From: Carcharhinus amblyrhynchos
Taxonomy: Eukaryota
Reading direction: 5' to 3'
Assembly: GCA_965287045.1 (NCBI GenBank)
Contig: OZ336878.1
Span: 105,152,001-105,216,000 of the forward strand
DNA length: 64,000 bases
Shown piece after piece: positions 5,089 through 52,285 of the stretch (its first letter is position 1; the number at the start of each line of letters is the position of its first letter). A program made the position numbers and the translations under genes. The notes beneath the pieces are model-generated. The model saw only the letters and a list, made by a program, of their open reading frames with translations. It was not told the DNA's origin and searched no databases.

Positions 5089-5141
5089 TTATGCTCCCTG
5101 AGTTTTTGTTTTCTGACGTAGTGTGTAGCTGCCCATAGTCC
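5089..5141 (-). CDS. Micro-exon gene, candidate terminal exon E15: (G)TMGSYTLRQKTKTQGA*
   Basis: Acceptor gttatttgtag, open in phase 1 to TAA at 5091-5089, with AATAAA about 30 nt downstream (5060-5055). Confidence 0.45.
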
Positions 5142-5157
5142 CTACAAATAACCTACT

Positions 5158-5825
5158 TATAAGAATATAAGAACATAAAAAATAGGGGCAGGGCTAGGGC
5201 ATCTAGACCTTCGAGTCTGCCCCAACATTCAATAAGATCATGGCTGATCTGAAGTGGATCAGTTCCACTTACCCACCTGCTCCCCATAACCCTTAATTCC
5301 CTTATCGATCAGAAATCTGTGTACCCGTGACTTAAACATTTCGAACGAGGCAGCCTCCACCACTTCATTGGGAAGAGAAATCCAGAGATTCACAACCCTC
5401 TGAGAGAAGAAGTTCCTCCTCAACTCTGTTCTAAACTGCGCCCCCCCACCCCTTATTTTGAGGCTGTGCCGTTTACTTCTGGTTTCCTTTCTAAGTGGAA
5501 AGAATCTCTCTACCTCTACCCTATCTAGCCCCTTCATTATCTTGTATGTATCTATAAGATCCCCCCTCAGCCTTCTAAACTCCAATGAATACAGTCCCAA
5601 TGTACTCAATCTCTCCTGATTAGCTAACCCCCTCATCTCCGGTATCAGCCTGGTGAACCTTCTCTGTACTCCCTCCAAGGCAAATATATCCTTTCGCAAA
5701 TAAGGGGCCAAAATTGCACACAGTACTCCAGTTCCAGCCTCAACAGTGCCTTGTACAGTTGCAGCAAGACCTTTCTGTTTTTATATTCTATTCCCCTCGC
5801 GATAAAGGCCAACATTCCATTCTTG
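5158..5825 (-). mobile_element. Young 5'-truncated CR1 LINE (3' end)
   Basis: ORF 5259-5711 (LEGVQRRFTRLIP...LYSLEFRRLRGDLI...RRNFFSQRVVNLW) plus 3' UTR and TTCTTATG-like tail; closely similar to the copies at 20630 and 57541. Confidence 0.95.
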
Positions 5826-5853
5826 GCTTGTCAAGAAGACTTGTCAGGCTTAC

Positions 5854-5877
5854 CTAAGTCGTAGGTAGATGTTTGCA
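5854..5877 (-). CDS. Micro-exon E14 (24 nt, phase 1-1): (V)QTSTYDL
   Basis: Donor AG|GTAAGC; weak acceptor ggatttag. Length and its 759-nt distance from E13 match the fourth exon of the other cassettes. Confidence 0.5.
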   Translation of the reverse strand, partial: CKHLPTT

Positions 5878-6636
5878 CTAAATCCCTGGACCCTACTAAA
5901 CACTGGCACCAGACGAGCAACACAGTCATCTGTGCAATTATACAGTTTTATAATTCATCCGAATTGTTCTACTTCAGGTCAGAATGTTCAGGTGTTCTGG
6001 AGCAGAGAACATCTGGTGCCTGTTTTGAATTTGCTGTTGGAAATCATTAGTCACTAGTTCGTGGAATCTGCAGCTAATTTACATTGTGGATTTGATATCA
6101 GAATAATTTCTGGTAACTCCAGTAATCCAATGTAAGCTCTGGACAATGTTCAACTAATTCTAATCCAACTAACGAAGAAAGTTTTGCCTGCTGCTGTGAT
6201 ATGTGGATATGCAACACAGTACGTTTCTCCTGAATTATTAGTATTGGCAAAATAGACATTCATCTTGGAGATTTCTGGGCTCATTGCCGTTGTCGATTTG
6301 GTTGTAATACGTGTAACATCCGCCAAGATTACTAATTAACCACTCAGCAAGTCTGTGAGTTACCTGGCCACTTACGATAATTGGAAATAATGAATGTCCG
6401 CCTTTTTAACAATGCTCATGAAAGAAATGCGTACTTCAAAGCACACTGTGTTTAGTTGCAGCCTGAATAGCTCGCTCGACACTGGGTCATCAGGAAACTA
6501 CAGTTTCAGCATTGTCTTCTGATTGTTTTTAGCATTTGTGATCAAGTTCTGAATGGGACTTCAATTTTAAAAATAATAACTCACACATGCGAATACGGTC
6601 ACATTGACAACGGCAGATATTAGTGCACTTTCTTAC

Positions 6637-6663
6637 CTGCTTCTTTTTGGCGGATTACGCTTT
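6637..6663 (-). CDS. Micro-exon E13 (27 nt, phase 1-1): (E)SVIRQKEA
   Basis: atatttgcag|AAAGCGTAATCCGCCAAAAAGAAGCAG|gtaaga; ends in KEA like E5. Confidence 0.75.
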
Positions 6664-7989: not shown

Positions 7990-10700
7990 GCCACAGAGTC
8001 CTGAAGCTACAAAGCACGGATTCTGGCCTTTCAGTTCAATTGGCCATTCTTTCCATAATGCAATCCCAGCCAATCCTATTTTTCTGCACTTGGCCCACAT
8101 CCCTCTAATTGTTTCCCAAGCGTATAAGTATCCAAATGCTCTTTAAATATTGCTACTGGACCTCCCTCAACCACTTTCTCTGGCAGCTCAGTCGATATAC
8201 ACAGCATTCTTTGTGTGTAGCATGGATTTAGTGCGTAGTAGTTTGTTACATACGGTTAAATCTCAAGTGATCCAGGGCAAGGTATCTAAATGGATACGAA
8301 ATTGGCTCCTTGACTGAAGCCAGAAGGTGGTTGTGGAGGGTTATTTTTAAAGCTGGACGTCTGTTGTCAGCAATGTGTCTGAGGTATCAGTACTGGGTCC
8401 ACTGTTATTTGCCATTTATGTTAATTACTCGGATGAGTATATAGGAGGAATGATTAGTCAGTTTGCAGATGACCCCAAGATTGGTGGTGCAGTGAATAGT
8501 GAATGACATGTTCCCCGATTGTAACGGGATCTTGATTAATTGGGCCAAAGAGCTGAAGAATAGCAGAAGTAGTTTATTTTAGATAATTACAAGATGATGC
8601 ATTTTGGTAGATTGAATTTGGCCAGGAATTACTCGGTTAATGGCAGGGCGTTGGGAAGAGTTACAGACCAAATGGACTGAGGGATACATGTTCATAATTC
8701 CTTGAAAGTGGAGTCACAGGTGGACAGAGTGGTGAAGAATGCATTCAGCATGTTTGATCTCATTGGTTAAAATATTGAATACTGGATTTGGGATCTCTTG
8801 TTGAAGTTATACGAGGCATTGGGAAGGCCGCATTTGGAATACTGTGTACAGTCCTGGTCACCTTATTACAGAAAGAATGATATTATCAAACAAGAAAGAG
8901 CACAAATAAGGTTTGCTTGCATGCTACTGGGACTTGATGGTTTGAGTTATAAGGAGAGGTTGGATAGACAGAGAATTTTTCCTCTGAGCACAGAAGGCTG
9001 AGTGATGATCTTCTAGAGGTCTATGAAATAATGAGGGGCAGAGATCAGCGAGATGTCAATATTTTCCCCGAAGGTAGGGAAGTCTGAAACTAGAAGGCAG
9101 AGGTTTAAGGTGAGAGGGGAAAGATATAAAAGTGCCCAGATTGGCATTTTTTCACACAGTGGGTGGGGATTGTCTGGAACAAGGTGCTAGAGGTAGTATA
9201 GAGGGGGGTATTTTTTTTAACGTTTAGAAAGACAAATGGGTAAGATTGGTATGGAGGGGCATTGGCCAAATGCTGGCAATTCGGATTAGTTTAGGGTTTA
9301 AAAAGCATGGACAAGTTGGACCGAACGGTCTGTTTCCATGAAATAAACTTCTGTGACTCTATAAATCAGTTGCCCCTCAAACCCTATCACTATTGTCTCC
9401 CCTCACCTTAACCCTATGCCGTAAGGTTTTCATTGTTTTCTTTCCTCAGGCAATGATGACGTGCTTCCATCCTGTCTATGTCCCTCATCATTTTATACAT
9501 GGCAGCAAGATCACTACCCATTTCCCTTCATTTCAAGGAATAAAGTCCGAAATTAGCCAAACACTCGCTATATCTCTGGCCCACTTGTCCTAGCAAAATC
9601 TTCGTTGACCAGTGGCTTCCATATTACAGAGTGCACACATCTGTGTTCCGCAGTCCAAGTTTGACATTAACAACGGCTTATACAACTACAACGTAATGTC
9701 TCAAATCCCACCTTCAATTCCCTGACTGTTGGGAGGTGGGGGGAGCGGTTTGCGAAACGCCTTCTTCACCTCCCTATCTAGCTGTGAGGCTGCTTCCATG
9801 AACTATGTAATTTTACTTCGTGGTCTTTGTGTTCCTCAACAAATCCCAAGGTGCTGCCATTCAGTATATCAGTTCTCTAGAGCTTGGCATTCCAAAATAC
9901 AACTGCTTACAAATATCTATATTTCAATCCACTTGTCAATACTTGGCTTACGTCCGTAACTGGTGATGGTTATTCTGCATTTTTTGATAAAATTCTTCAC
10001 TATCAACAAAGGTCCGAAGTTTGTATCATCTGCACAATTACCAACCAAGTCGAGTGTATTCACATCCAAATCATTAAATCAATACCAAATAACAAGGGTC
10101 TGAGCACCGAGCCCTAATACACACCACTAATCACTGTCATCAGTCCGAGAAATATATTTAAAAAATCCTCGACATTAATTTATTTTCCCAGCAGCAAGCC
10201 AATTTTAAATCGAATTAGCTAGCTGTTACTAGATCCCACGCCAGCTACTGTCCACACTAGCCTGACATGCGGAACCTTGGCACAGGCTTGCTTAAGTCCA
10301 AGTAGAAAACTCTCATATCTTCACCCACCCTCTTGGTCACCTTTTCGAAAATCTCGAAAAGGTTAAGCAGACATGATTTCCCACTCACAAAGCCTTGTAA
10401 ACATTGACTATTCAAATGTTGGTAGTTCGTGTCCCCAGACTTAGTTAAGTCACTTAACCAACACTGAAATCAGGTTTACAGGGCTGTAATTCCCTGGCTT
10501 ATCTTTGCTACACTTCTATAAGAAAGGAAAGAACAAAACATTAGCCATCCTCTAGTCTTCGAACCTTTTACCAGTGGAACCGAGAAACAAATATCGGCCT
10601 CTGCAAATTCTTACCTCGCCTCCCAGAGGTTCTAAGGATGCACTTGATCATGCCCAGGTGAATTATCCACGTGAGTGCGTTTTAATGTGCAAATGCCTCC
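7990..10700 (-). mobile_element. Degenerate CR1 LINE, split by a nested opposite-strand CR1
   Basis: Minus-strand 3' end at 7990-8215 resumes at ~9365 and continues through RT-like sequence (ADD motif, plus strand tcatctgc at ~10026) to ~10700. Confidence 0.65.
8220..9362 (+). mobile_element. 5'-truncated CR1 LINE nested in the above
   Basis: SVLGPLLF, FADDPKIGG and LYEALGRPHLEYCVQSWSPYYRK (ORF 8798-9001) motifs and 3' tail gactctat. Confidence 0.9.
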
Positions 10701-20626: not shown

Positions 20627-22322
20627 CATAAGAACATAAGAAATAGGAGCAGGAGTAGACCATCTAGCCCTTCGAGCCTGCCCCGCCATTCAGTAAGATC
20701 ATGGCTGATCTGTCGTGGCTCAATTCCACATTCCCGCCCTCTCCCCATAACCCTTAATCCCCTCGCTTATCAAAAACCCATCAACCCGAGTCTTAAAAAT
20801 ATTTAGCGAGGCAACCTCCACCACTTCAACGGGCAGAGAATTCCACAGATTCACCATCCTTTGAGTGAAGAAGTTCCTCCTCAACTCCGTTCTAAACCGC
20901 CCCCTCCCCTTTATCTTGAGGCTATGCCCCCTAGTCCTACTGTCCATTCTGAGCGGGAAGAGCCTCTCCACCTCTATCCTATCCATCCCATTCATCATCT
21001 TATCTGTCTCAATGAGATCGCCCCTTATTCTTCTAAACTCTAACGAGTACAAGCCTAGTTTAATCAGCCTCTCCTCATAGCTCAACCCCCTCAACTCGGG
21101 CATCAGCGTAGTAAACCTCCTCTGCACTCCCTCCAAGGCCACAATATCCTTGCGTAAGTGCGGCGACCAAAACTGCACACGGTACTCCAGCTGCGGCCTC
21201 ACCAGTGCCGTATACAGCTGCAGCAAGACCTCCCTACTTTTATATTCAATCCCCCTCGGTATGAAGGCCAGCATCCCATTAGCCTTCCTGACCACCTGCT
21301 GCACCTGCAGGCTGGGTTTTTGCGACTCATGCACAAGGACCCCGAGGTCTCTCTGCACCGTCGCCTGCTGCAGTTTTTCTCCACGTAAGTAATAGTCTTT
21401 CCTACCATTATTCCTACCAAAGCGGACCACCTCGCACTTGTCAACATTAAATTCCATTTGCCAGTTCCTGGCCCATTCGCCCAGCCTATCTAGATCCTTC
21501 TCCAGACTCTCCACACCCTCCGCGCAATTTGCCGTTCCACCAATCTTGGTGTCATCAGCAAATTTCGACACCATACACTCGGTTCCCTCCTCCAGATCAT
21601 CTATATAAATGATAAATAGCTGAGGCCCCAGCACCGACCCCTGGGGCACTCCACTAGTCACCAACCGCAAATCCGAATAGCACCCATTGACCCCCACTCT
21701 CTGCCTCCTATTAGACAGCCAATCCTCCATCCACGCTAACACCCTACACCCAACTCCATGCCCCCTTACCTTCTGCAATAACCTCTTGTGAGGTACATTG
21801 TCAAACGCCTTCTGAAAATCAAGAAAGACCACATCCACCGGCTCTCCTCTATCCACCGCCCTAAACACATTCTCATAGAACTCCAATAAATTTGTCAGAC
21901 ACGACTTCCCCTCAACGAAACCGTGCTGCGTCTGCTCTATCAAGCAATTCCCCTCAAAATGCCTCGCTATTTCCTCCTTGATGACGGATTCTAACATTTT
22001 ACCAACAACAGACGTTAAACTAACCGGCCTATAATTCCCTGCCTTTTGTCTGCCACCCTTCTTAAACAACGGCGTAACATTAGCCGTTTTCAAATCTTCC
22101 GGTACTTCGCCGGAATCCAGCGACGTTTGGAAAATAACCACCAAGGCATCCACTATCACCTCCGCCATTTCTTTCAGAGCCCTTGGATGCATACCATCCG
22201 GTCCTGGGGACCTGTCCACAATCAGTCCCTCCAGTCTGTCGAGCACCTCCCCTCTAGTAACAAGCCTGTCGAGCGCCGCTTCTCTAGTAACAAGTATGTC
22301 GAGCACCGCCTCTCTAGTAATA
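20627..22322 (-). mobile_element. Young 5'-truncated CR1/L3 LINE with uninterrupted RT ORF (20720-22306, 528 aa)
   Basis: SPGPDG, NYRPVSLTSVVGK, LDFQKAFD, GVPQGSVLGP and FADDTK motifs, C-terminal RRNFFTQRMVNLWNSLP, 3' UTR and (TTCTTATG)n tail; no endonuclease domain. Confidence 0.97.
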
Positions 22323-22879
22323 TTCTGCCGACAACTTAAGACTCAGTTATACAAATTAAAACATTACTTAATGAGACAGTTAAACCAAAACTGAACACAA
22401 TGAAGGCGTTGAATTGTTATCCATATGATCTGAACTGAAGCATGGCAGTAAAGATCTCCTGCTTCTAACTGTTCTCAAAATGGCCCATTCATCTTCCAGG
22501 CTTGAAAAACACTATTAGTATAGATAACAACTGTAAATATATTGATGTAAGTAGTTTAAACAGACTTGAAACTTCAAAAGGATTTTGTCGAGTGGACTGT
22601 ATGCAGACATCCGTCTATAAGCAAAAATGAAACACAACTCATTGTCTGCGAAATACGCGGCTCATTCATGGATTCATAACACCAGATAACTGTTTGCGTC
22701 TGCATTCACATTCAGTGTGTTAATCAATCCCCACGGGGGCCGCTTTATTTTGCTTGGGAAAAGTACGTTATCGCTTAACAAATGATCACATGACCACAGT
22801 CAGTAATTATTTTGTTTTCCCAGCAGTCACGCACACCCAGCTAAAATGTTCCAATATAATGGAAATTCTAGGCTCTAGT

Positions 22880-31104: not shown

Positions 31105-33182
31105 CTAATGAGAAGAAAAATCTTACATAAGAAAATGTCACGATAAGCAATTAAAGACGATTTGAAGGATCCAGCGTTTAAGTTATAATGCCTAGCTTAT
31201 AATAAATAAAAACGTGATACGAGCAAATTTTTTAATTAACCAAAATTAAATATTCTCAGGCATCATTATTTTATGTGTTATATATTTCGAAATTTGCATA
31301 ATTTGCAAAGTGCTTCTGAAGAATGCGAAATGTCTCTGTGCTTTTGCGAAGGAACAGCATGCAATTGCATATTCTATCCAGATGATATCCTTAACCTGAT
31401 GATCCTAACGCACAACTTGTGTTAAATTTCTTAAGGTTCCTGAAGATTCTTCCATCCGGAGTTTTTTTTTTGACGTATGAACAGAAATCAAATAAATGTT
31501 AAATTAGGTGGCAAATAGCAATTAAGTCTTAATGGGTATTTGAATCTCAACACGAATGCTGTGAGTAACATAGTTTTCGTGGGAAATTGACTGATAGTAG
31601 TTGGCAGGAAATTGGAGTAGTGATCACAATTTAACCGAATTGCACACCAGTTTTGAAGGTCATATGTAATTAAAGTGCTGCAATTTGTTGAGATCTAAGT
31701 CTTAAACGATTTTCTGCAAGGAAGGATTTTTTTTTTTGTATTACGTCCTCAGGAATGGATTAGTAATATAGAAGGGCGAGGTAAAATGCACTTCTTCCGG
31801 AGTTGTCTTCCTGATCCTATGGCAAATCGGCAGTGTTTCAAATTCCACCAGCAGCCATCAAGGCAAAAGATCCTGAAATTTAGCATCAATCCCAACGTGA
31901 TATCATTACATATTCGTTGATACAAATTTCATGCAGAGTTTCTGCCACGCCGGCTCCGTCAGTGTCCTCCCGCTCCTTCTAATGTTTGTGACGATATGTG
32001 TAGTGCACGTATGTTCGTCCTGTAGTTTCGTATTTGCATGCTGATTGTCGAGACTCCAGTTTATTTTCATCACAACGCTCATCAGAAATATTTCCTGCTT
32101 TGCCATGCGTACTGGTGTTGCTGAAGTGTTCATATGTTAGCAGTTAATCTGTGTTACCGCATTATTACCATCAAATCAATGGGATTTAGATCAGGAGTTC
32201 CAGGCCTAAAGGTTAGCAGAACAAAGCTGCAATAGAAGACTTCCACAGCAAATACGCGAAAGGCCCTTTTCAGTTAGTTTGCAAAAGAATCGCGAAATTT
32301 ACCCAGTAAGTAAGGATGAACATAAAGTAAAAAAAAAATTGAGTGGCACGTGGGTTTCCATTGGAACCTAATTCGGCGAGAGAATCAGCGGACAGAGTTG
32401 AAATTAAAGGGCCGACTCAAATTACCTCTATCTTAAGTCAAAAAAAAAGTGTTAAAGTAATATGGCGCCATTTAGGAATGAGTGCAAAGCCTATCTGGCA
32501 ACGACAAGGCAATCTGTTCTTATTAATTATGCGAGAAAGTTTACATGGTGTAATTCTAAATAAAAGTTGAACTGATAACAAGAAATAACTCAAAATCAGT
32601 ATGGATTTGATAACAGGAAATTATGTGTGAATTGCTTCATTGAAATCCCTTTTGGTTGTTTAACAGTGACTTCACGTGGTATTCGGTTACTTTCCCCAGT
32701 TAAATCAGCACGTTTCGATGTCATCTGAAATATGCCAATGCCTAAAGTTGATTCCGAAAGTGTGGGACCGTTTTTCATTTATGGATGTGTATTCGTGTCT
32801 CGCTTGACTCTCCTGGAATCGACGAGTATGTAGCACGCCCACCGTCACCCTTCCAGAATTATCAGCAGAGAGCTGAAGGAGGGAGCCTACAGTGTAAACC
32901 GGCGTTGCTGAAACTGCACCTACATCTGTACTGGGATCGATTGTGTGTAGTTTATCTATCCTGCAATAAATCACCGCTGTGATTAGTCGCCGTCTCGATG
33001 TGAAACTTTGTCCTTCAGTAAAGAGTATTCAAGGACATGCGGAACATGTCTATAATGGGGTTTCAATAATGCAGCTGAAATTATGGCATTATTATAAAAT
33101 TCTCCGTTTAATTATGGTATATTATATTTTTTCTCTACGTCATCATCCCTTATGCCTGACATGAATACATGGACATACGTAC

Positions 33183-33212
33183 CTATGAATTCTTCTTGCT
33201 GTGTGCCTGCGA
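33183..33212 (-). CDS. Micro-exon E10 (30 nt (I)AGTQQEEFI, or 24 nt 33183-33206 (S)TQQEEFI)
   Basis: ttttcttacgttctag|TCGCAG|GCACACAGCAAGAAGAATTCATAG|gtacgt; two in-frame acceptors; same gtacgta donor as E6. Confidence 0.78.
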   Translation of the reverse strand, partial: SQAHSKKNS

Positions 33213-33515
33213 CTAGAACGTAAGAAAATCATGAGAAAAATAAAAACAAAACATGCAGAACATTTTTCCCCCGATCAATGTAACTATATGAAAAATGTAA
33301 GCAAAAAGATGTTCCCTATAGCAATTAGTAAACACGTCAGTCCAACAATAATGCCTTTAGAATAGTGAATATCACAAAGTCAACAACATCTCCTTGGCAA
33401 CCTGTTTGGTGCTCTTCCACGCAAGTTAACATTCCCATAATAGTAATTCATACATCGTATTCTTTGAAAATACGTTTCCTAAACCCACAATGAAACTGGA
33501 AAATCTGCGACTTAC

Positions 33516-33542
33516 TTGTAACTTGTTCTTTGGATAGTTTTT
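33516..33542 (-). CDS. Micro-exon E9 (27 nt, phase 1-1): (E)KLSKEQVT
   Basis: ttttctcttatatctacag|AAAAACTATCCAAAGAACAAGTTACAA|gtaagt. Confidence 0.8.
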
Positions 33543-34149
33543 CTGTAGATATAAGAGAAAATCAGAAGTTTGCCGAGAACAATGTGACAACAGAACATTA
33601 ATCTGTACTGACGAGTTTACCAATTTTTAGTGACACCCTTATTCACGATGTTGTCAGAATGAACATTGTGCATAAGGTTGGTTGCCAAGGAAAACAATAC
33701 GACTTGGAAAGATTGCATAAATTGTCTTCATTCAAACTATCAAACACATTTCGTCTTAAAATATTGCCAGTAAGATTAGTGCAGCTCTGCGTATTGATGT
33801 TCATTAAAGCAGCAACATATGTTTTGTTCAGGCAGCAAACACGCAAATTGACTGTTCGCGAATGTAATTTGCTAATGCAGATAAGTGAAGGTTTCCTAGG
33901 GTTAAGGAGTATACTGCAGATAAATGTTAAAGGCGAACTAAGCAAGTTAATGTTGGAAAATCAAAAAATATCAAGATAAATTTCAGAAAAAAAAGTATAT
34001 ATTTTTCAGTTAACAAATCTCACCAGCGTCCGACAATTTTGTTTTCAGGCTCATAATTTCTTAAAAACAAAGTCAGTATGCATATCACATGTTAGAAACT
34101 GTGAAGGAGGTTTGCGTGTTCTGACATGAAAACAACAAAATAAAAGAAA

Positions 34150-34302
34150 ATGTTAGCAGGTCTGACAGCATTTGTGGAGAGTGAGGCTGCGTCAATATTT
34201 CATGATTCATATTTTATAGGGCGCATCGGAAGTAGTTAAATAAGAACACAAGGTGTTTAATATATTTTTGTCTCAACAGATGCTACTAAACCTGCTAACG
34301 TT
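34150..34302. mobile_element. Inverted-repeat (MITE/Penelope-like) remnant
   Basis: gttagcaggtctgacagcatttgtggaga pairs with tctcaacagatgctactaaacctgctaac; the arm resembles the element at 25830. Confidence 0.65.
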
Positions 34303-34879
34303 TTACAATGCTTTCTGTTTTAAACAAAGAGAAAAGTTGTGCCACTGTTCAATGATTTTGAGATACATTAATCCTGTAGTGGTCGTTATAAAACTTTCAT
34401 GAAATTTTCATTCATTTGAAGAGTCCAAACTTCCGCTTGGAAATAATCATTTTATTAATTTATAGAAAAAAATATTCGGAATAAAACGTCAAGCTGTTGT
34501 TTTTCAACATAACATTATCCTGAACGAAAATAAAATAGAGTTCATCAACTTTGCTGCTTACATTATTGTTCACTTATTCTAGAACGCAAACATTTAACAC
34601 CAACAAAATACGCATATCATGGCTTGTTGCAAACCGATTTTGAATTTTGTTGCATAATCAATGCAACAGTTCAATTATGAATGCAAAAATTGAAATGTAG
34701 CATATATTTCACATTTAAAGCAACTTAATAACCGTCCATGTACTAAATTTACTTTTCGATGTTTTGAGCAGGTGTAAAAGAACGTGTTTATGTTCCAGTT
34801 TCTGCACATGCATAATATTGCACTGCACTATGCTTGCAGCTAAATTTATTTAAGCTGAATTCCCGTTTATATTAATTAA

Positions 34880-35835
34880 TTTGTAAAAAAAACTTCTGCA
34901 CCTTTATTGGACAAAAATTACACTATTGAACCTCTTAAAATTTATCAGATCATGACCAAAAATGTTGTTGGACAATGAGAGAGATAGATAGTGGTAAGTC
35001 TGTGTGTTCGAAAAATAGAGTGATGACAATCTTTCACTGCGAGAGAGTATGTTTGCATGGTAAAAAGTGCATGAAGACTGGACAGAAATATTTAGGTTAA
35101 TTGAACGGAAACATACCTGTCAAAATATGTTACAAGTCAGAGAATGCGAAATTGCCTATTTTCAGGAAGAATCGGCATAAGCACAGCATCAAATAAGTGA
35201 GAAATTTCAGATCTCGAAAGGCAGAATGACCTGCTTAACCCAATACATTAAATGCAATTACAGTGCCAGTAGAGCACGTATTTAGGAAAGCTTAAGCAAT
35301 ATTATCGGCTTTTTCTGAGTAGCACTGAAAATAGAAGTAGAGCGAATGAGCTTCAATGGTTCAGGTGGTCAATGGGAACCATTTTGGATGACAACATATT
35401 GTGCATGGTCACGTTATTTAATGAAGGATATAAAAACCGTGGAAGCAATTCACCGATGTTTTATCGTCTTATTAGGAAAGGAGGGACACGCTCGCCTTCA
35501 ATCTGTCGGTGACCATCATAAAATAAGTGAACTGACTGGGTATATAAGTTTCTGAGTCGTCTAGATAAGGTGCAGTTAAAACAGATTTTTCCATTTATGG
35601 GGTAATCTAGAATTAAGATCCGTAGTTCGTCATTTAAAAAAAAACAGATGAATCGTTCGTTTCTTTCTCGCAAGTTGTCATGAGATTTGCTTCAACTGTT
35701 CCTGAAAAGATGATGCAAATAGACCTTTGAAAAAGATTACTCCTGGTAGAGTGAACAGAGCTGTGGTAAGCAAGGTGTGTTTAGATTATCGTTGTTACCC
35801 GATTTGAATACAGGACCGAATACAAGGCTTGAATA
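34880..35835 (+). mobile_element. Old degenerate CR1 3' fragment
   Basis: YCAWSRYLMKDIKTVEAIHRCF (ORF 35346-35555) aligns with the CR1 RT C-terminus. Confidence 0.7.
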
Positions 35836-35977
35836 CCGACTTCAGGGTAGGATCAAAACAGCTACGCCCGGATCAAACTGGAGGGTCTGCCGGTCCTTCT
35901 GCTGCCGACCTTCCCGCTTCTTTATTGCAAGCTGTGAGCTTAGCTGATTGCAATAGACGCGTGTGGAGATTACATAC

Positions 35978-36004
35978 CAGAATCTTTTTGCAATAATTGT
36001 CTCA
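35978..36004 (-). CDS. Micro-exon E8 (27 nt, phase 1-1): (M)RQLLQKDS
   Basis: ctttgattttcag|TGAGACAATTATTGCAAAAAGATTCTG|gtatgt. Confidence 0.88.
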
Positions 36005-36901
36005 CTGAAAATCAAAGGGGCAAACAGTTTATTTGTTTCCACACGTTGTCATGCATTTTATTTTACAAACTTTAATTGACACTGTAACATCAAACCAAGT
36101 AGAATAGATTAGTTGTACACAGACGAGCTCTCTCATTGCGGTCAAAGGCTGGACGCCGACTCAATGGTTAGCATTGAAGGCTCTTGCGCTAGGGGCTCCA
36201 GCTTCAATTCAGGCCGTATGTGGAAATTATATATGCTGCCCGTGCCTGCCTGGGTTTCCAACGTACATGGATATGATGTCCTGACAGAGAATCAATGCGA
36301 ACACGATGGACAGAAGGGAGTATTCCTACTCTATTCATCTGCAGAAGGTCAGCTGCGCCCAGCAATACTACTTTCCGTTGAACTGAGCTGCTTGATGACA
36401 ATTTCAGAGTTCTTAGTTCAGTTTGTACTCTTTACAGTGAACATCTCTTTCAGTCAACATGATGTGTGTTTCTTTGAAACAACTCCTGCAAAGAGCAATC
36501 ACTTTTATGTTTCAATTCCACAGCAATTGATATTTTTGAGGCATCATAAAAGAAAAATTGGCACTGAAACAGGATATCGTTTATCTCATGTGAATACCAA
36601 GAAAATTTCAAGAACACCAAGAAATACCAAGAAAAAACTAGGACAAATCGTTCTGGGCCCTCAAACGTCGAATATTAGAATGCTGGGGAGAAGGGGTAAG
36701 TGAGATAAACGTTGAGGTGCCAGCGAGGGAAGACCACAGAAGGAAACAATTCTTTGTGAGTTTAGAAATAGGGTTTATTTTTATTTAGATAAACGTGAGA
36801 CTTTAGACATTGATTTGCATATATGAAAGGCAGAAATGTTTGATGTGCTTCAAGGGTAATTTTAAAAAATCATAAATCCAGCCAATGGTCTGCAGGTTGA
36901 C

Positions 36902-36972
<71 letters not shown>

Positions 36973-36975
36973 CAG
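36902..36975. repeat. (AGAT)n microsatellite
   Basis: About 17 tandem AGAT units. Confidence 0.97.
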
Positions 36976-37722
36976 ATTAGCTGACCTGCTCGTACAGGCA
37001 AAAGAGATAGCGTGTAGTTATTGCCGATTTGTGTCTTCAATCAGCAAAGCAAAAAAAGTGTTCCTCTGGATAGCGTATTCTGCACTTTGGGAAAGAGAGC
37101 AACATTACAAATGGGTCGCTCATAACAATATTTATCCCTATAATATGATGTAAATTATTTAATTCCTGAACGTTGGTTCATCTGGCAAAACCAGGAAACA
37201 CAATTAAGATGGCTTGCAAAGATTCTTGATTGAAAAGCATGATGCTTCATAACGAATAATCATCGTGGGACTGTTCAGGTTCCATTTAATGATTCATGTG
37301 GAAAGCAAACGCATTGCTCAGTCTGCGGCAACCTGCAAAACGTTGATGCAACACTGCATTTGCTGAAAAAGATACAATTTCATAATGCCTAGTTTGTGTA
37401 CACAAAAACGAAGATTGCTTGCTGAACATGCCTTGTCTCGAATGGTGGTCGTGGGAGCTGCAATATCGATAGAACTGACTGCCAAATTATCATCACAATT
37501 TTGTGCAGGAATGAAAATCCACTATTTGGAAATACCCACAAATGTCAAAACAACAACGCGTATCTCAGGAATATGTGAAAATGGCTCATTCAGCGAGTGA
37601 ATGCTGGGGCAAGGATTGCGGCAAATGGTGGCAGAGTGCAAGTCTTGAGCGATGACTGTTTCCCTGAGGATAACATTCAAAATAAGCAGATGAAAAAGAA
37701 ATTGGTTGCGATAAATGAAATT

Positions 37723-39209: not shown

Positions 39210-40810
39210 ATTAAAGGCAGTCAAGTCCCCTGGCCCTGATGGAATGTATCACAGCCTCCAAACAAAATGGTGAGGGAATTGTAAACGCATTTGTTGTAAT
39301 TTATAAAACGTTGCTGCACTCTGGGCCATTCTTGCAGGTTGGAAAACAGCAAATGTAACACTATTGTTTACAAAGGGAGGTAGACACAAAACAGGTAAAT
39401 ATTAGTTGGGTAATTTAACATGTGTATTGTGGTAACTGCTTCAGTCTATGATCAAGGACAAAATAGTGGGACTTCTGGGTGTGAGTTATCCCATTCGGAT
39501 GATGCAAAGTGAGTTCATGACAGCCATGCCATTTTAAACTCGTTTACTCCAATTATTTCAGGACATTCCCAGCAGAGCTTGATGTGGTATACCTGGATTC
39601 CCAGAAGATAGTCAACAAAATTCTGCACAAAAGGCTGTTGCATATGATAAAGTTGTATAGCATAATGACTAATGCACTGGCATGGGTAGAGGATTGGTTA
39701 ACTAATCAAAAAAGCAAAAATAGGGTAAATTGATTTTTTTCCTGATTGGCAATCAGTGACGAGTGTTGTGCCTCAGTTGTCAACATTGGAGCCGCAATTG
39801 CTTGCAATTGACCAAAATGTTTGTTGTTTCGGAGAAAGTGCAGTGTGTCAAAGTTTGCAGATGACATTAAGATGAGTTACAAAACTAAATGTGCAGAGAA
39901 CACTCAACGTCTGCAAACGGATACAGTTATTCGAAGGGAGTGTACATGGGTCTGTCAGATTTGGCACACCTTTGGTAAATGTGAGATCATCCATTTTTGT
40001 AGGATCAACAGAACAATGGCCCATTATTTAAATGCTAAATGTTGCAGCTTGCTGCTGTGCACAGGGTCCTGGCTGTGTGTGTGCATAGGGTTCGCAAAAC
40101 GTTGGTTTGCAGGTGCAGCAGGTAATTTGGAAGGCAAGCGGAATTGTGTCCTTCATGGCTGGAGGGAAGGAGTTTAAAACTGGGATGTCATATTGCAGCT
40201 ATATAAGGTGCTTGTGAAGCCATACCTGGAGTACTGTGTACGGATTTGGTTTCCTTACTTAAGACATAGCATACTGGCACTGGATGGGGGGTGGTGGCTG
40301 GGGGGCAGAGGTGGGGGGACTTGGTGAGGGGGTGCACATGAGATTCACTAGGTTGATTCCGGATTTGAGTGGGTTGGCTTAAGAGGAGAGATTGTTTCGA
40401 CTGGGACTGTATTCCGTGGCATTCAGAAAATGAATGGGGATTCTGTGGACACATAATCATGAAGGGTATAGATAGATAGAAACAGGGTGATTATTGTCAC
40501 TGTCAGTTAAACTGAAATCGAGACATTGCCTCAATATGAGGGGTGCAAAATTTGCGACTAATTTGAAGAGGAACTCCTTCAACAAAAATGTTGTGATCTG
40601 TAGAATTCCCTGCCCAGTGAAGATGATGCAGCTACCCATTGATTTGTTTTACTTTCAGGGAAAGATATATGTTTAAACAATAACGGGATTAAGGGATATG
40701 GTGAATGGGCGGGTAAGAGGAGTTGAGTCCATGATCTTATTGAATGGCGGGACAGGCTCAAGGAGCCAAATGAAATCCTCTTGCTACTATTTTTATGTTA
40801 TTATGTTCTG
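39210..40810 (+). mobile_element. Degenerate 5'-truncated CR1 LINE
   Basis: KSPGPDGM start, SKFADDIK (ORF 39821-40177), LKRNSFNKNVV and ttatgttattatgttct tail. Confidence 0.92.
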
Positions 40811-40836: not shown

Positions 40837-40863
40837 TGGTCGATTGAAGCAGTTTTCTGCATT
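40837..40863 (-). CDS. Micro-exon E7 (27 nt, phase 1-1): (E)CRKLLQST
   Basis: ttattattttccattag|AATGCAGAAAACTGCTTCAATCGACCA|gtaagt. Confidence 0.88.
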
Positions 40864-42149
40864 CTAATGGAAAATAATAAGAAACATTGCAGTCAGTAAC
40901 TAAAACCTCATAACGGATCAAACAATGAAATTACAATGCACGAAAATCATTAACTGAAACATGACATGGGAGGGAAATGTTTAATGCATTGCAATACACT
41001 GTTATTTTTTGGCAGTTACATATTTCAATATTAGCCTAATTTGTAAATTGATTTTTTTTTGGCGGGGGGGGGGGGGGTGGTGGGGGGCGTGCGTTGCAAG
41101 ATGCCGATGTGTCTTTCGTATGGAAGCACATTATACCACGTAACCAACAGATAGTCTCCTGAGATCGGAAGATCCTCGACGTGCAACTTGTGTCAAATTG
41201 CGGAAACAGAATTGCCTGATTCTGTCCACATACATTAGAAATTTGAGGGTGTTGAAAAATGTGTGGAAGAGGGAGCAATTGACGAATGCACACACAACAG
41301 TTCTACCGGCGAGGGAAAACGCGATGCTCATGACAGTCCGATAAATGTTTTCCGCCAGGCTAAATAATTCAAATATCTCTCCCTCACCTGAGAAGGATCT
41401 GTAATGTTGTGGAAGGATCGATGTTTAAGTACATGTTGTAGGCTGGAGGTACAGACCTGATGGCAGTGATATCAATTTATTTCCATCATTTGGCTCACTA
41501 GGAACTTCTTCCGTGATAAATGTTTGCAATTGGAGTAAAATGCGCTACACGTTGATGCATGGATGCTAAATTGTTGCCATCAAATCCACAGGAATACAAA
41601 ACTTGAACTCGAGGCTCAGAGGCAATTCTGGCGCATGCGTGGTGCATTTTCAGAGAGGATGGATAATTTAAATTTGTTGAAACGTGATTTTGTCTTTCAA
41701 GGTTATAATCAGACACTGTTTTCCATGTCAATAATTGAATGATTAGTGGTTTGGCAAGAGGACATCATTTGGATAGAGAGTACACACATTACTATAATGA
41801 GAAAACAAGCAACAACAACCTCCTAAATTAAAGATGAAGACACACACGCACAAAATTAAAATATATCACATGGCAACATTTCGCATTTTCAACTCTTGGC
41901 AGGCAATCGACAACGAATCGTACAAAGACATGACAATCTCTGGTGGTCAACGCTGTGGGTAACGCAGCCCTGTATAATTTTGAATCAATTCAACTGCTAA
42001 TGAGCACTACGTTAAAGTGAGTTGAAATTTGGTGAAGATACATCATAAGCGAATAACGTCCTTGAAATGTTCTTATTTGCAGAGCAGAAGCACGGTTCAT
42101 CATTACATAGAAAGATAGAGCATATAAAATAGCAGCAAGAAAAGTAGCG

Positions 42150-44700: not shown

Positions 44701-45134
44701 TGCAGAGTTTGCCTTCCCACTGCCTGTAATTTTGAAGCCTCCACAACCATTCTCTACCTGAATCCCCTGAGCACATCCGTCCTTGCCCTTCAGTGGTGCA
44801 AGGCAAACTCTATGCAGACGTCCTACCTCTTCATATCCGCCCCAATCATCCACAAATCTGAGGTCTTCCCCTTCTTCAGTATCCTTCCAGACACAGATTG
44901 ATCTCGTTTGTGTGTGTTTTTGGGACATCTGAATTTTTAATGTTTATAAGTAATCATAGTGATACAAAGAAGATTAATCAAGACGTCGAATATTTCGATG
45001 AACAAGATGAATATGATTTCATTATACACTAAGTTATAAATATGAAACAATTATATCTCGATATATTCTAATATCGTCACTGCGCATTCCACGGGTGCCT
45101 ACATTGAAACAAAAAGAAGAATGCAATTACGTAC

Positions 45135-45158
45135 CAATCAAGTGATTGAGTTGACCAG
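45135..45158 (-). CDS. Micro-exon E6 (24 nt, phase 1-1): (A)GQLNHLI
   Basis: atttctcgttacag|CTGGTCAACTCAATCACTTGATTG|gtacgt; found at the position and length predicted from the cassette pattern. Confidence 0.8.
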
Positions 45159-45873
45159 CTGTAACGAGAAATTAATTTTATCAGTGCATGGCAGGTAAGG
45201 TGCATCTTACATGTAAGATGCGTGCTGCATCGATAGATAGAGATCAATTTAATAAATGATAATAGAGACGCTGTGTTGTAGCAAATAACAAATGTGCCAA
45301 TTCTGCAGGAGTGCCATTTTAGAAATGTGTATCTCACAAAGGTAAACCAAAGCGAACCATCCCACTCAGCTATTTGCCTCGCTACACAACTTTGAACTAA
45401 TTGGATCTCATAATACATATACTTTGCAAACTATTTCCCAAAGTTCACAGTGAAAATGCACAATTTGTACGTTATCTGACGATTTCCTGCTGGAATCTAT
45501 AGAGGTAAGTTTCATTTGTCAAGAAACAAATCAGCACTCGTTAGCTAGTCTTTGCATAGATTACTGTTTTCAAATATGTAAATGAGAGATTTATTTATAT
45601 GTCAGCAATGTTTGCTGGAAGTTTCAGAAGTTTTCTAAAAAAAAGTGATTTTGTTAACAAATAAAATGAACATGCCGAATATTTTTTGATTAAAAAAAAG
45701 GCGTACATTCAAACAGAATGAAAAATCCATATTCCTGACAGCTCCAAAAACATCATCAGCACATGGAATGGTCATAAACATTGGGGCGAACTGAGAGAAT
45801 GCAGCGGTGGAGAAAACACGAGATGTCAACAGAAATGTGTGACAAGCAAATATGTCAAAATAGAGAATCTTAC

Positions 45874-45903
45874 CAGCTTCCTTCAACTTTGCCTGTAGGG
45901 TTA
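45874..45903 (-). CDS. Micro-exon E5 (30 nt, phase 1-1): (V)TLQAKLKEA (alternative 36-nt acceptor to 45909)
   Basis: tttgttttcaagacatag|TAACCCTACAGGCAAAGTTGAAGGAAGCTG|gtaaga; the acceptor is ambiguous between two in-frame AGs. Confidence 0.7.
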
Positions 45904-46724
45904 CTATGTCTTGAAAACAAATTCAATAGGCACGTTATAATGGGTGGTTGTATTCTCTTCGAAACAGCTAACTCATAATTCAACGACAATTACAAGTCAG
46001 TGTTCGGTGGTTCTACGATACTTTAAGTCATAACTTAATGGCTCTCCTATTGAGAAATTGGGATTATCGCAAAGATCGCTTCTCAATCTACCTTGACAGT
46101 TTCCACGTGCGTTTACATGACAATTATCCATAAGGCATAACGTCCCATGACCATTGGGTTAGAATGGGATTCATCAGCTAACGTAAATGAAAAGGATAAC
46201 TTTGTATGGTCCTGAGAGTTAGAGATCATGAGCGCACAGGAAATTTTAGAATGGAAAATAAAATCTTCTCACTTAAATTCAACTAATTAATTACAGACCT
46301 AGGCCAGTGAGACACGAGAAACGTCAAACACCTTGAAGTCTTCGGCGGGAGTTTGTTAATCAATTTGATGCAACCAAACATAAATGCCACCAACAAACGT
46401 AGGAAATCAGATTTTCCCGAACTGACCACCAAACTCAACCCTTCCCCACAATGATCGGACCTGGCCGGCGCTGGCCGTGATGCAACACCACCGAGACACA
46501 TCCAACACGTCGCATCCTGTGCCCGAAGCAGGGCAAGACCCCGCCAGAACAGGCCCGACATGACTGAGGTAACCTACTCCATGCTTCAAATGAGCCAAAA
46601 CGACAACACCCACGACCGGAGCCAACATCAGCCTTACCCAACAGCCCTCCCTCCACCGCCCCCCCCCCCCCCCCCCCACCGCCTCCCTGCCAACCCCGCT
46701 GCCGCCATTACCCAATTCTGAACA

Positions 46725-47040
46725 AGAACATAACAACTAGAAGCGAGGGTAGGACATTTGGCATCTTGAGCATATTCCGCCATTCAATGACATCATGGCC
46801 GAATTATCATGGACCGAGCTTCACTCACCCACCCGCTCACCACATCACCTAATTCCTTTATTGTTCAAAGGTATCTTTATTTTTGCCTGAGAAACATTCA
46901 AAAAGGTTACCTCTACTGTTGAACTGGGCAGGGGATACCACAACCTACCTGCCTCTATCTTATCTAGCCCCTTCAAAATGTTACATTAATCCATAACATT
47001 CCCCCATGCTTCTAAATTCCACTGACAATAATCGCAATCT
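46725..47040 (-). mobile_element. Degenerate CR1 3' end
   Basis: aagaacataacaactagaagcgagggtaggacatttggc...ccgccattcaat tail and UTR homologous to the young copies. Confidence 0.8.
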
Positions 47041-47384
47041 ACGCAGCCGACTGATACCATTTAAGGCTGACTGTACGTGCACCCTGTCCCAACATCTCAT
47101 TCACTTAGCTTTGAAATTTGTCTTCTCCCGTTCAATAGCTCATTTAATGTTAGCTGCGTAATTGCTGATTGTGCAGTAAAATGACAGGTACCGCCTCTTT
47201 GCGTATGTATGTGTTTCACTGAGGGAGATTCTGAAATATTTCACTACCTCAGTCTCACTCGCCAATTGTGACAAATTTTAGGCATACAGGATGTCAGAAT
47301 TCCAATCGGATGTCAGTCGCTAACTAATGACAATTTGCTGCTCATTGTCGCCCCAATGAAGTTACAAATCCGTCGGTCGTTGGC

Positions 47385-47900: not shown

Positions 47901-48372
47901 GTAATATGTTCGATGTTGGTAGAAATGAAAATTGTGTCTAGGCTGCACTGTATGCAATCTGTGCTTGACTATTAAGCTTTCCCAAAATGTGCGTTCTACA
48001 AAAATACGTGTTACAATCCCAGAAATATTGGCAACGCAAGCACTTCTTTACTCAAAGAATGGAAAACCTTTGGAGTACCTAAAACAAAAGGGTGCAGGAT
48101 GGACAAAGCACAATCCATCATTATACTACAATTTAATGTAGTAGTGACACAACAAGGAACAACAAAAAAAAAATCATTGGAATAAGATTGTGGTCCCTCC
48201 AAAATTCGGCAGGTCATGGTGACATCAGTAAAATAAAAAAAAAGCCTGAGCGTATACCTTTATTCTGTCACTTTTAATGCACCCTTCCAGATGCCTGTCT
48301 AATATGGCTAATATCCCTCCTTTCGTCAGCTGTGAGCTTTGCTGCGTATGTACACATTTGCAGATCACATAC

Positions 48373-48399: not shown

Positions 48400-50055
48400 C
48401 TAAAAGGGAAGCAAATAACACACAGTGCCAATTTTGTTTCCGAACATTGACATGTTTAAAAATTTGACGGAATATCACTTAAAAACGCATATAGCCGTTT
48501 GCATATCGAATTATAAGGCAAAATTCAACTATTCCAAAAAAGAAGCTAATTTCTCCTGGTGAATATGATTATCTGCAATTCAACTTGTTTACAGTTCTAC
48601 AAGGCAAACATTTCCATAGAAAGTTTATATCTTATCAAAATAACTACCATTCTGATCAGGATTAGCTACGATTAATAATGCAAATCTTATCCAGGGTGAA
48701 ATATGTATACAATAGTAATATTCATGATTCTCGGTTACATGAACAACTGGACTATTCACTGTTGGTCGTGTTGAATTAATTTTTGACATCCTGCATTACG
48801 TATGATTCTACTGAACTTTGCTTTGTATCATCTCGGATCCGAGTGTGGGGAAGACAATATGCATAATTGTGCACAACTAATTCGTCCAATCGGTCGTTCG
48901 CTCAAAATTAATTGATGCGATCATCATTTTTCATGATCAGCACTACAATTATTTGTACAGTTCACTTAATGTCACATCTATTCATTAGAAAGATGCTGCA
49001 GATGTTTCTATTTGCAACCATCATCTAGTTCGAGCAGTCTTCTCTCATTGCATTCATTGATTTAAACAAAAACGGGTCCTTCGCCTTTGTTTTGGTTGCC
49101 AGCTGTTCCTCGCAGTCTTAAAGTGGTGACAAGCTTTATTTTCGTTTCCTTTAGTTCTTGATTACTGCACTGGTTCTTGAGCTAAATAACTCTCCTATTA
49201 ATTATGTAGCTTGTGATCACGTCCATTGCATTTGGCACCGGCGCCGTAATTATTTTGCCTATTGCACTTTTCACTTAAGTTGGATTTAGGCGCGCGTCAA
49301 CTTGAGTGGCGACAGCCATATGGCGGTGCATGTGCAAAGATGAGAGGGTGAAATTTTTCAGTGTATATTCCATGCATAATTTAGCGTTGGCCATTTATTG
49401 ACCATTTCAGTGAAGTTACCGTCCAATATCAACTGGTGGACTGAGAAAGCGCTTTAACTTCGTGTCCACGGGCTCTCGAAGATATTCAGCGCCACAGATC
49501 CCCTCCTTCCCCAAATTTTGCTTCTATCCTACCATCTTATCCCAGTCCCTCGGGCCACATTTTTTTCCCAAGCTGAGATTGCCACATTGCAGGGACCACA
49601 GAAATGTTGGTAAATTAGATTGGCACACCATTGTTTCAGGTGGGCCGTCCCATCGAAGAAATGGTGGAAGTAGTCTGGAGGAATTTCTGCCTCCATTTAC
49701 TTAACATTCGAAGGAGCACCAATTAGCTGATTTGCAGCAAACAGAGGTTGTTTTTTTTTCCGTCAACCATTCAAACGATGGTGTAGGCGTCCCGCCAAAA
49801 TCACTGACCCATTTAAACAAAATTTCCTAAAATAACCATTAATTCGATTGACTTGATATCTGAACCTGCGCTTTGCGATTACTTTTTTTTAATTATTCCA
49901 ATTTATTTCAAACTTTGGTTGATGACTGATATTTTTCGAATAGTGCAGATCACGATTCAATTAGAAGTGCATAATTTTTCATTGCAAACTGTGCCAATAC
50001 TCTCAATCTTTAAATGGAAACATGAGACAATATATGACTCTCTGATGGGACTTAC

Positions 50056-50085
50056 TTGTTTTTTGGAGAAGTGTTCTGCATTCAT
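50056..50085 (-). CDS. Micro-exon E3 (30 nt, phase 1-1): (N)ECRTLLQKT
   Basis: acatttttag|ATGAATGCAGAACACTTCTCCAAAAAACAA|gtaagt; paralog of E7 and E11. Confidence 0.85.
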
Positions 50086-51150
50086 CTAAAAATGTTGTAA
50101 ATGCATAAAGAAAAATAAGAACACAGAATTAATTGTATAACAATGCCATTCTGGACATCTGGTGCGTGCCTTTGTCATGTCATTTAATTTAATTGTGTTC
50201 CATCTTTTCATCGCCGTTTGTGAGCTTTGTAGTAGTAGAGTAGTGGCAATTTTCCGGAGATCCATATGATAGGCAATGTCAAATGTTCTTCCCTTGTTTC
50301 ATATCTTTTAAATTCATAATAAAGTAAAATCTAGTCAAAAGTAAACATTTTGAAATAGCATTTATTTTCCCAAAATTAATGGCGCAACTCTATTGGCACT
50401 TAATCGGTATTTATTTCCTATTTTACGAAAAAAATAAAACAGTTTAATTCGGAGTATCAACAACTTTGAGGTAATACGTTCAAGTATTTGATTCCAGAAA
50501 TGACAGTCACTAATGCAATCAAAAATCATCCCTCCACACGTTAAGTGGATGTGATATCGTTTAACACCGCCACAAATCTTTGATTTGACAAACGTTAGGA
50601 AGAGTCAAAGTATAATTTAGTTCCTCTTTAAATCAGCTCACATATTTCCAATTATAAAAAAAGATGAGCAGGTGATTTAATGAAGCCGACAATTGGCACG
50701 TTGTATCTTTGATGGACTATTTGTTAATTTACGGCTGAACATTTTTTTGAATGCTTTAGCCTTTTTGCTTTCAGCAAATTTAGAAAATATGAAATATTCC
50801 TACGCCCTTACCTCAAAGGAGGCTGCCGGTTTGAAAAGGGTTTTCGAACGTATCAACAAGCGGTGCATGTGTTTTATGTGAGAAAGACGGGATTCCCAGC
50901 ATAAGCATCCAAATTAGCATAAATATAATGGGTATTACAAACGCAGGCTGTACATAATTCAGTTTATAGAAACATTTCTCGAAAAGTTTGCACTGTTTCG
51001 CCTGGTTATGCCCGGGTTGTATGATCGTCCTGACATATTTCTAGCGAAAGCACTCCACCTGCGCTATTTTAAGAGCAGTATGGCTTAGTATACATTACTC
51101 AGGCAACTTATCCCATAATGCAGAGCACAAAAATTAAAATGTATTCTTAC

Positions 51151-51174
51151 TCAGGGTTGCTACAGATTCAGTTA
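51151..51174 (-). CDS. Micro-exon E2 (24 nt, phase 1-1): (V)TESVATL
   Basis: ttttgtttctgtttgttttag|TAACTGAATCTGTAGCAACCCTGA|gtaaga; only the phase-1 frame is open. Confidence 0.8.
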
Positions 51175-52269
51175 CTAAAACAAACAGAAACAAAAACCTC
51201 ATTGCATATTTTCTAGCAGTTCATCAACGTTAAGATTACAAAATATAATCGCAGACGTTTTAAACCAAATACATTAATTATGGTTATTTTTGTAAATTTT
51301 GCACAAATCGCAATAAAGTTTTTGCAATATCACACCTTCTTCTACGCATTGCCGACTGAACTTGCGCATTAACCTTAAGAAAATATTGAACACGGACTCC
51401 CAAGTCTATTTGTTTTTCTGATTTCCTAAGTTTTTTCCCCATTTTAAAAATAGTTTATGCCTCCATTCCTCTTTCCAAACGACATAGCCTCATACTTTTC
51501 CACATTGGGTAAAGAATTGGCAGATGAAATACATTCTCTTAACCCTGATACGTCAGGGATCTAAAGTTCCTGTATAACAACAACGTACCTAGGGCTTTGA
51601 CCTGCCAGTAACTTCTTTGAAATAAAGTAAGAACATTATCATAGATGGTGCCACGGAATGCAAAGCATGAGGAATGGTTGATACTGGAATAATACTCGAC
51701 CTACAAAATAAGGGGGGGCTCTATGCGTGAAGCAACAGGAGTAGTAGTAAGGGGTCTTGTCGGTAGTTCTGCAAGTCTTCATCCATGTGTTGCTCAACAA
51801 ATTCCATGCAACGCTGGATTGCACGTTTTGGGAAGAGTATTTCCAAATTGGCCGAGGAGGCAAAGAATTGGCTCATAACTTAAAAAAATTAACCAAATTA
51901 GAATTTCAAGAGTCGTTGTCTTGAAATCTATCGGGCGTTTTATCGCAACCAACATAAGGCACTTTGGAACAAAACAATGCAGTATGCATCAAGGACCACT
52001 GCATCGACAAGTTTAAATAATTAAGTGTTGATGCAACTTGTGTATAGAATATTGTATGCCTAAAAGAACGCACACCAACGTCCACTATTAGACCAGAAAG
52101 GGCCAAAACAATGATCAGTAGGGATGAACAACATTCCCTCTCCCAGCATGCTCACCACATGCCCCTCCACCAACACCCTCGCCCCTCCTCTCCCCTCACC
52201 ACTGCCCCCATAGACCAGCCAGTTAAAGAAATGTAAGGATCTTCACATAAGAATCAGTACATCATTTAC

Positions 52270-52285
52270 CTTCCAGCAGCTCCAT
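52270..52285 (-). CDS. Candidate upstream/first coding exon E1: MELLE, phase-1 donor
   Basis: ATG GAG CTG CTG GAA G|gtaaat is in the right phase for E2; the 5' boundary is unclear (weak acceptors, A10 run). Confidence 0.4.

Follow-up and report, generated by a model that had tools for sequence, protein, structure and literature searches.

A 64,000-nucleotide stretch of the Carcharhinus amblyrhynchos genome (GenBank assembly GCA_965287045.1, contig OZ336878.1, forward-strand positions 105,152,001 to 105,216,000), referred to here as the window and numbered from its first letter, carries on its minus strand an array of at least 14 symmetric (phase 1-1) micro-exons of 24 to 36 nt, extending from ~5.9 to 51.2 kb. 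The exons make up an ordered cassette of four, A-B-C-D, which encodes ~35–39 codons and is present three times, with homology of exon length lying inside diverged introns. We consider it likely, at a probability of roughly 0.6, that this is a genuine coding array under selection that encodes a helical segment and is most likely the inner part of a larger gene.

The original prediction for this locus had joined 13 internal micro-exons, a first exon and a terminal exon into a protein of 137–139 aa. Its core exons proved to be real, and the run of symmetric phase-1 coding micro-exons with helix-type composition was borne out and has apparently been kept by selection; the model was incomplete, having missed the exon at 34024–34059, and two of its boundaries (D1 and A3) were off. 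The exons of the revised model are given below in 5′ to 3′ order along the minus strand. The splice score quoted with them is a crude one, which takes in pyrimidines at positions −20 to −4, the YAG, donor positions +3 to +6 and a G as last exon base.

A1, 51151–51174, minus strand: 24 nt, phase 1-1, TESVATL, bounded by AG and GTAAGA; splice score 22, in the top 0.7 % of 1226 candidates.
B1, 50056–50085, minus strand: 30 nt, ECRTLLQKT; splice score 21.
C1, 48373–48399, minus strand: 27 nt, RHLLLRDA; splice score 23.
D1, probably 45874–45909, minus strand: 36-nt form with acceptor ttttcAAG, open in phase 1.
A2, 45135–45158, minus strand: 24 nt, GQLNHLI.
B2, 40837–40863, minus strand: 27 nt, CRKLLQST; splice score 24, the best of the model.
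C2, 35978–36004, minus strand: 27 nt, RQLLQKDS; splice score 23.
D2', 34024–34059, minus strand: 36 nt, IMSLKTKLSDA; the missed exon, repeat-2 homologue of D1.
E2, 33516–33542, minus strand: 27 nt, KLSKEQVT; splice score 23, with excellent splice sites.
A3, probably 33183–33206, minus strand: 24-nt form, TQQEEFI; the alternative 33183–33212 uses an acceptor 6 nt upstream, and both forms score 21.
B3, 31078–31104, minus strand: 27 nt, CKKLLQMS; splice score 22.
C3, 15070–15096, minus strand: 27 nt, RQMLAKDV; splice score 22.
D3, 6637–6663, minus strand: 27 nt, SVIRQKEA; D1 homologue in repeat 3, splice score 19.
A4, 5854–5877, minus strand: 24 nt, QTSTYDL; a doubtful exon, splice score 15.

All 13 internal micro-exons first proposed were found on the minus strand where they had been placed, with AG before and GT after each, and the donors of all 13 start GTA. 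Their proposed lengths (24, 27 or 30 nt) are multiples of 3, they are open in phase 1, and translating them one by one returned the peptides that had been given. Across the revised model, with its 14 distinct exons, phase 1 is likewise open throughout, whereas phase 0 meets stops in 11 of the 14 and phase 2 in A1 and B1 only. The final letter of every model exon is A or G, and no junction codon, read by hand from the first two and last one letters, is a stop. The introns of the array span 309 to 15981 nt. Since the exons are multiples of three, share one phase and end in A or G, any subset of them would splice in frame without producing a stop in a junction codon.

Segments bounded by AG and GT and open over 21–33 nt are common in the window, the minus strand having 669 of them and the plus strand 557; with 1226 such segments, the criterion used to find the exons is insufficient on its own to sustain the claim. 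A stricter filter left 21 minus-strand candidates vs 17 on the plus strand, 10 of the 21 belonging to the model. By splice score, 13 of the 1226 candidates from both strands reach at least 21, and 10 of these 13 belong to the model and lie collinear on one strand (nine exons plus the alternative acceptor of A3). The other candidates at or above this score lie at 57214–57234 and 44880–44909 on the plus strand and at 2708–2734 on the minus strand. D1, A2 and D3 fall in the top 3–6 % of splice scores, and A4 only in the top 21 %. The excess over chance stems from the quality of the splice sites, the A-B-C-D repetition and the codon-position bias of the differences between paralogues.

Comparison of the repeats with one another showed that B exons (starting at 50056, 40837 and 31078) are 67–74 % identical in pairs and align without indels, B1 sharing over 27 nt 74 % of its positions with B2 and 67 % with B3. 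C exons (48373, 35978 and 15070) are 59–63 % identical, again without indels, and all three start with TGAGACA. In three-way alignments that included 100-nt flanks, with invariant columns counted by hand from the alignment listings, 16 of 27 columns were invariant in the B exon vs 36 of 194 in its flanks, and 14 of 27 in the C exon vs 44 of 194. Blastn between the repeat intervals recovered B2 with B3 (E 1.9e-6), B1 with B2 (E 0.008), C1 and its downstream flank with C2 (E 3.7e-6) and, as the strongest match between repeats 1 and 2, the D exons (45866–45932 with 34016–34082, 73 % over 67 nt, E 4.8e-8); C3 was not recovered by blastn alone. Among equal-length pairs of minus-strand candidates, those at least 62 % identical were the B and C pairs only, besides pairs between copies of a long interspersed nuclear element (LINE) and one chance pair involving that LINE. 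Members of the D family turned up in each of the three repeats, one of them being the exon at 34024–34059 that had gone unlisted.

The differences between paralogues at codon positions 1, 2 and 3 number 2, 9 and 12 for B, 9, 7 and 15 for C and 4, 2 and 7 for D, summing to 15, 18 and 34. This pile-up at third positions is a substitution pattern of the coding type. As a negative control, homologous intron remnants of the same repeats (41923–42068 with 32499–32646, and 41015–41053 with 31277–31315) were found to carry indels and to have no conserved splice sites.

Several further segments were considered as exons and rejected. The repeat-2 homologue of the well-scoring segment 32545–32571 carries a 2-nt indel and lacks a donor. 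The counterpart of E2 in repeat 1 (~45476–45501) measures 26 nt and has no GT at its donor position, and 41015–41053 and 31277–31315 are intron remnant. No additional B- or C-like exon was found elsewhere in the window, and probes of the A, D and E types upstream of A1 and downstream of D3 gave scores within the range of shuffled sequence.

The comparison also bears on individual exon boundaries. D1 had been drawn at 45874–45903, a short form that relies on an inner acceptor (atAG) located 6 nt downstream and is open in phase 1 too. The two codons added by the 6-nt extension read [D]-I where D2' has [E]-I, and the change in the Ile codon (ATA/ATT) is synonymous; since the extension is conserved with D2', D1 probably begins 6 nt earlier than first drawn and occupies 45874–45909. 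D1 and D2' are 64 % identical without indels. D2' has a good pyrimidine tract, acceptor tttgtttttAAG, donor G/GTGAGA and an open phase 1, and because it begins with AA and ends with G, its insertion after C2 changes neither the reading frame nor either junction codon of the earlier model. The segment 33516–33542, which had been listed at the D position of repeat 2, is better regarded as an extra exon, E2, confined to repeat 2; repeat 3 yielded no counterpart.

The flanks show A2 and A3 to be homologous, with upstream introns 59 % identical over 191 nt (E 3e-5) and a common donor context G/GTACGTA; the sequence of the A exon itself is little conserved. Alignment with A2 places the homologous acceptor of A3 at tcgcAG, so that A3 is probably the 24-nt form, 33183–33206. 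For D3, probing the 9.2-kb interval with D1 gave as the best two local matches a collinear pair that lies on the two edges of the exon, each match taken singly being within shuffle range.

A separate observation concerns the introns following C1 and C2. A stretch of ~45 nt directly downstream of these exons (48328–48372 and 35930–35977, minus strand) is conserved between the repeats and includes a common AGCTCACAGCT. This stretch might act in the control of splicing or be no more than a remnant of the duplication.

The encoded segment has a helix-type composition. Helix formers (AELMQKR) make up 62 % of the 115 internal codons of the 14 exons, compared with 37 % in 1152 background candidates, a value reached in 0 of 10,000 random draws of 14 from that background. 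Proline and glycine together account for 0.9 % (one Gly or Pro) vs 10 %, which was reached in 2 of 10,000 draws. Hydrophobic residues, read by hand from the peptide listing, recur at a spacing of 3–4 nearly unbroken from A1 to C2, which fits an amphipathic helix or coiled coil. Each cassette runs from Cys-x-x-L-L in the B exon through M-R-x-x-L in C to [D/E]-I-x-x-L-x-x-K-L in D. The conserved Cys of the B exons sits in the hydrophobic seam at intervals of ~36–47 residues, and from this arrangement we infer a helical rod that would be able to dimerise.

A number of points weigh against reading the array as a selected coding region. The splice score is a crude, consensus-based scheme. The 30 nt upstream of D1 and D2' are 73 % conserved vs 64 % for the exon, the acceptor of D2' is AAG, and the peptide scores within the C family (19–25) fall inside a background that reaches 26. 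Paralogy supports neither A1, its flanks included, nor E2 nor A4, the last of which is also the weakest of the exons, with a weak acceptor (6 of 17 positions in its pyrimidine tract are pyrimidines) and with longer alternative acceptors present. The helix-type composition may partly stem from the way in which the A, D and E exons were chosen. Finally, the sole sequence set covering 30500–36400 consists of DNA contigs that are ~1.8 % divergent and contain no joints, and is silent on expression. The contig over B3 has 28 differences, 0 of them in the 27-nt exon where ~0.5 would be expected, and at a divergence of only ~1.8 % these contigs are too close for a test of conservation. In the same set, a piece of ~40 nt at 34146–34185 has a summed contig depth of ~25000 vs ~7–10 around it and is a very high-copy short repeat of the genome sampled there.

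On balance we favour a selected coding array, presumably expressed, that would have arisen by tripling of the four-exon cassette A-B-C-D, with repeat 2 holding one extra exon, E2. Its product would be a long amphipathic alpha-helical segment of the coiled-coil type. Free in-frame combination of the exons, through skipping, would be well suited to a helical spacer whose length varies. The segment would most likely serve as the rod, stalk or tail of the gene product, with true first and last exons that differ from those proposed and that may lie outside the window.

How far the gene extends is where the alternatives begin. The exons first proposed as its ends, together with a possible further micro-exon, are as follows.

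Candidate first coding exon, 52270–52285, minus strand: from an ATG to the donor GTAAAT, with an in-frame TAG 27 nt upstream and a T at −3.
Candidate terminal exon with stop, 5089–5141, minus strand: starting ~20–25 nt past the 3′ end of a sense CR1-like fragment at 5162/5167–5821.
Possible further micro-exon, 2708–2734, minus strand: 27 nt, phase 1, LEKHLKDD, downstream of the proposed stop; its splice score of 22 equals those of A1, B3 and C3.

These ends would define a small stand-alone micro-exon gene, with its ATG in 52270–52285 and its stop in 5089–5141, encoding a helical protein of ~140–150 aa once D2' is included. We give this reading a minor chance. Consistent with it are the ATG exon itself, which has an in-frame upstream stop and a usable donor, and the rest of the window, which yielded neither a larger coding exon nor an Ig motif or Pfam domain. 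The candidate first and terminal exons are present as sequence, and the analysis brought no support for either as a gene end. Combinations of an ATG with a phase-1 donor number 2 in 51175–54000, the candidate start being one of them, or ~1 per 1.4 kb, which is about the chance rate, and a CpG scan found no CpG island near 52.3 kb. At the other end, the CR1-like fragment begins ~30 nt past the A4 donor, so that the proposed terminal exon adjoins the 3′ end of a LINE and follows the weakest exon; minus this insertion, the intron between A4 and the terminal exon would measure ~57 nt. An AATAAA lying ~30 nt past the proposed stop is the one favourable, if weak, point for the terminal exon.

A stand-alone gene ending at this stop would also leave a top-scoring candidate exon, 2708–2734, downstream of it. 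The acceptor tract of this candidate is a (TAA)9 microsatellite (2736–2762) read on the opposite strand, and the candidate does not resemble the C family significantly, for which reason we mention it as a lead only. Beyond the array the window takes in 11.7 kb on the upstream side and 5.8 kb on the downstream side, and with introns of up to 16 kb the true flanking exons may lie beyond it.

In line with the original prediction, no Ig, transmembrane or B30.2 exon was found in the window. A regular-expression search for the Ig-type C...W...Y.C motif gave 0 matches in any frame of the window, 0 of 9 non-LINE minus-strand open reading frames (ORFs) matched a Pfam family, and no B30.2 (PRY-SPRY) ORF was present in 1–5000, the window ending 5.8 kb past A4. 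Hydrophobic 19-mers number 12 on the minus strand.

These results bear on a second reading, that the array is the cytoplasmic coiled-coil tail of a butyrophilin- or BG-like gene of the Ig superfamily whose Ig, transmembrane and possibly B30.2 exons lie outside the window. The architecture agrees, being a run of split-codon micro-exons that encode a helix. Chicken BG cytoplasmic tails have 13–36 exons of 21 (sometimes 24) nt, each encoding one heptad with split codons, and butyrophilins have a few heptad exons ahead of B30.2; the number of BG tail exons varies by duplication, and skipping or read-through stays in frame (PMC4046983). The likeness to the shark array lies in many consecutive tiny exons of one phase with split codons and in a helical product of the coiled-coil type. 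Butyrophilins have been reported in cartilaginous fishes (PMC12841164). Against the tail reading, the exons here measure 24, 27, 30 and 36 nt with none of 21 nt, and the repeating unit is a four-exon cassette of 35–39 codons, whereas the BG exon is a heptad of 21, sometimes 24, nt. The shark array also differs in having introns of 0.3–16 kb and in that no Ig or transmembrane exon was found within 11.7 kb upstream, a distance shorter than its longest intron. We regard a BG- or butyrophilin-type tail as unlikely.

Other genes offer partial parallels. Schistosome micro-exon genes (MEGs) encode secreted proteins in flatworms and have a signal-peptide exon followed by a coding sequence made up mostly of symmetric micro-exons that can be skipped in frame in various combinations. 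As in MEGs, it is symmetric micro-exons that supply most of the coding sequence here; the differences are that the host is a vertebrate and that the candidate first exon, itself unsupported, encodes M-E-L-L-E and no hydrophobic leader, and we claim no homology. Tropoelastin is a vertebrate gene with a run of small cassette exons of a single phase. The mini-exons at the 5′ end of troponin T (TNNT3; PMC2447309) are another such run. Both differ from the array in residue composition. To our knowledge, neither tropoelastin nor troponin T contains a helical cassette of four exons that is present in triplicate and has a single Cys in each unit. Literature searches brought up only BG and butyrophilin papers as parallels, and we make no claim that the array is absent from print. 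Compared with the known cases, the array is a micro-exon-encoded helical region set apart by its four-exon cassette unit and its kilobase introns.

Were the stand-alone gene described above real, its coding sequence would consist essentially of phase 1-1, purine-ending cassettes of at most 36 nt separated by introns of up to 16 kb, from which helical proteins of variable length, capable of forming disulfides, would be made. Such a vertebrate micro-exon gene is a doubtful proposition; if true, it would be a vertebrate counterpart of the schistosome MEG principle, reached through triplication of a four-exon unit.

Very unlikely, in our estimation, is a third reading in which the array is decaying or unexpressed, a relic of a formerly functional repeat region. 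The altered ancestral acceptor of D2', the dead repeat-1 counterpart of E2 and the weakness of A4 would fit such decay. Against a relic, the flanking introns can for the most part not be aligned, so that the repeats are old, and yet every copy of B, C and D retains top-ranking AG/GT sites, falls into an exact length class and is open in phase 1, and the changes between copies show the third-position excess. A chance collection of open AG...GT segments picked by eye has next to no probability: the background of 1226 candidates is large and A1, E2 and A4 are identified by splice sites and position, but a chance origin of the B, C and D exons is refuted by their pairwise similarity, by a splice ranking in which 10 of the 13 best-scored candidates are collinear on one strand, and by ordered B-C-D repeats that match in blastn with E values down to 5e-8.

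The remainder of the window contains no coding-like sequence other than pieces of LINE reverse transcriptase, and 0 Rfam matches. One such piece is a stop-free, 540-aa CR1-like ORF at 20723–22342 (minus strand; Pfam RVT_1, E 7e-33) inside the 16-kb intron between B3 and C3. Its best named relatives are elasmobranch proteins, from Chiloscyllium punctatum (64 %), Hypanus sabinus (62–63 %), Mobula birostris (59 %) and Pristis pectinata (59 %), and its identity to sequences from birds and turtles is ~45–53 %, a pattern that agrees with a chondrichthyan source. A 30-nt tandem repeat (22236–22320) lies at the 5′ side of the ORF. Further fragments of the same LINE family occur at 5162–5821 and 57541–58198 on the minus strand, at 40326–40809 on the plus strand, and at 46724–47048, 26860–27420 and 8771–8998, with mutual identities of 66–83 %; two of the fragments end within ~30 nt of micro-exon splice sites, one after the A4 donor and one after the B2 donor. 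The intron between C1 and D1 holds a GC-rich, low-complexity region at 46300–46740 (GC 0.54–0.58, CpG observed/expected ~0.7, with poly-C and poly-G runs), which is the sole non-LINE region to pass simple CpG-island thresholds. Microsatellites comprise (TAA)9 at 2736–2762 and (AGAT)19 at 36902–36977. The GC content of the window as a whole is 40 %, and its CpG observed/expected ratio of 0.68 amounts to mild depletion by vertebrate standards.

Given that annotated proteomes of sharks and rays are available, it is quite possible that an annotation of the gene containing this array already exists. For annotation work, the comparison of repeat against repeat caught an exon that had been missed by eye and is a useful check for loci of this kind. 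Recognition of a single exon under ~50 nt needs special help from the splicing machinery, and a run of at least 14 tiny exons with kilobase introns between them would put the definition of micro-exons to a demanding natural test. The conserved flanks, namely the pyrimidine tract upstream of the D exons and the element downstream of C1 and C2, are candidate regulatory sequences in this respect. The array would further provide an example of a helical segment that grows by duplication of a multi-exon cassette while its exons remain recombinable by splicing. If it is the tail of an immune-type receptor in a cartilaginous fish, the design known from BG and butyrophilin genes would be pushed back in time, in a different format.

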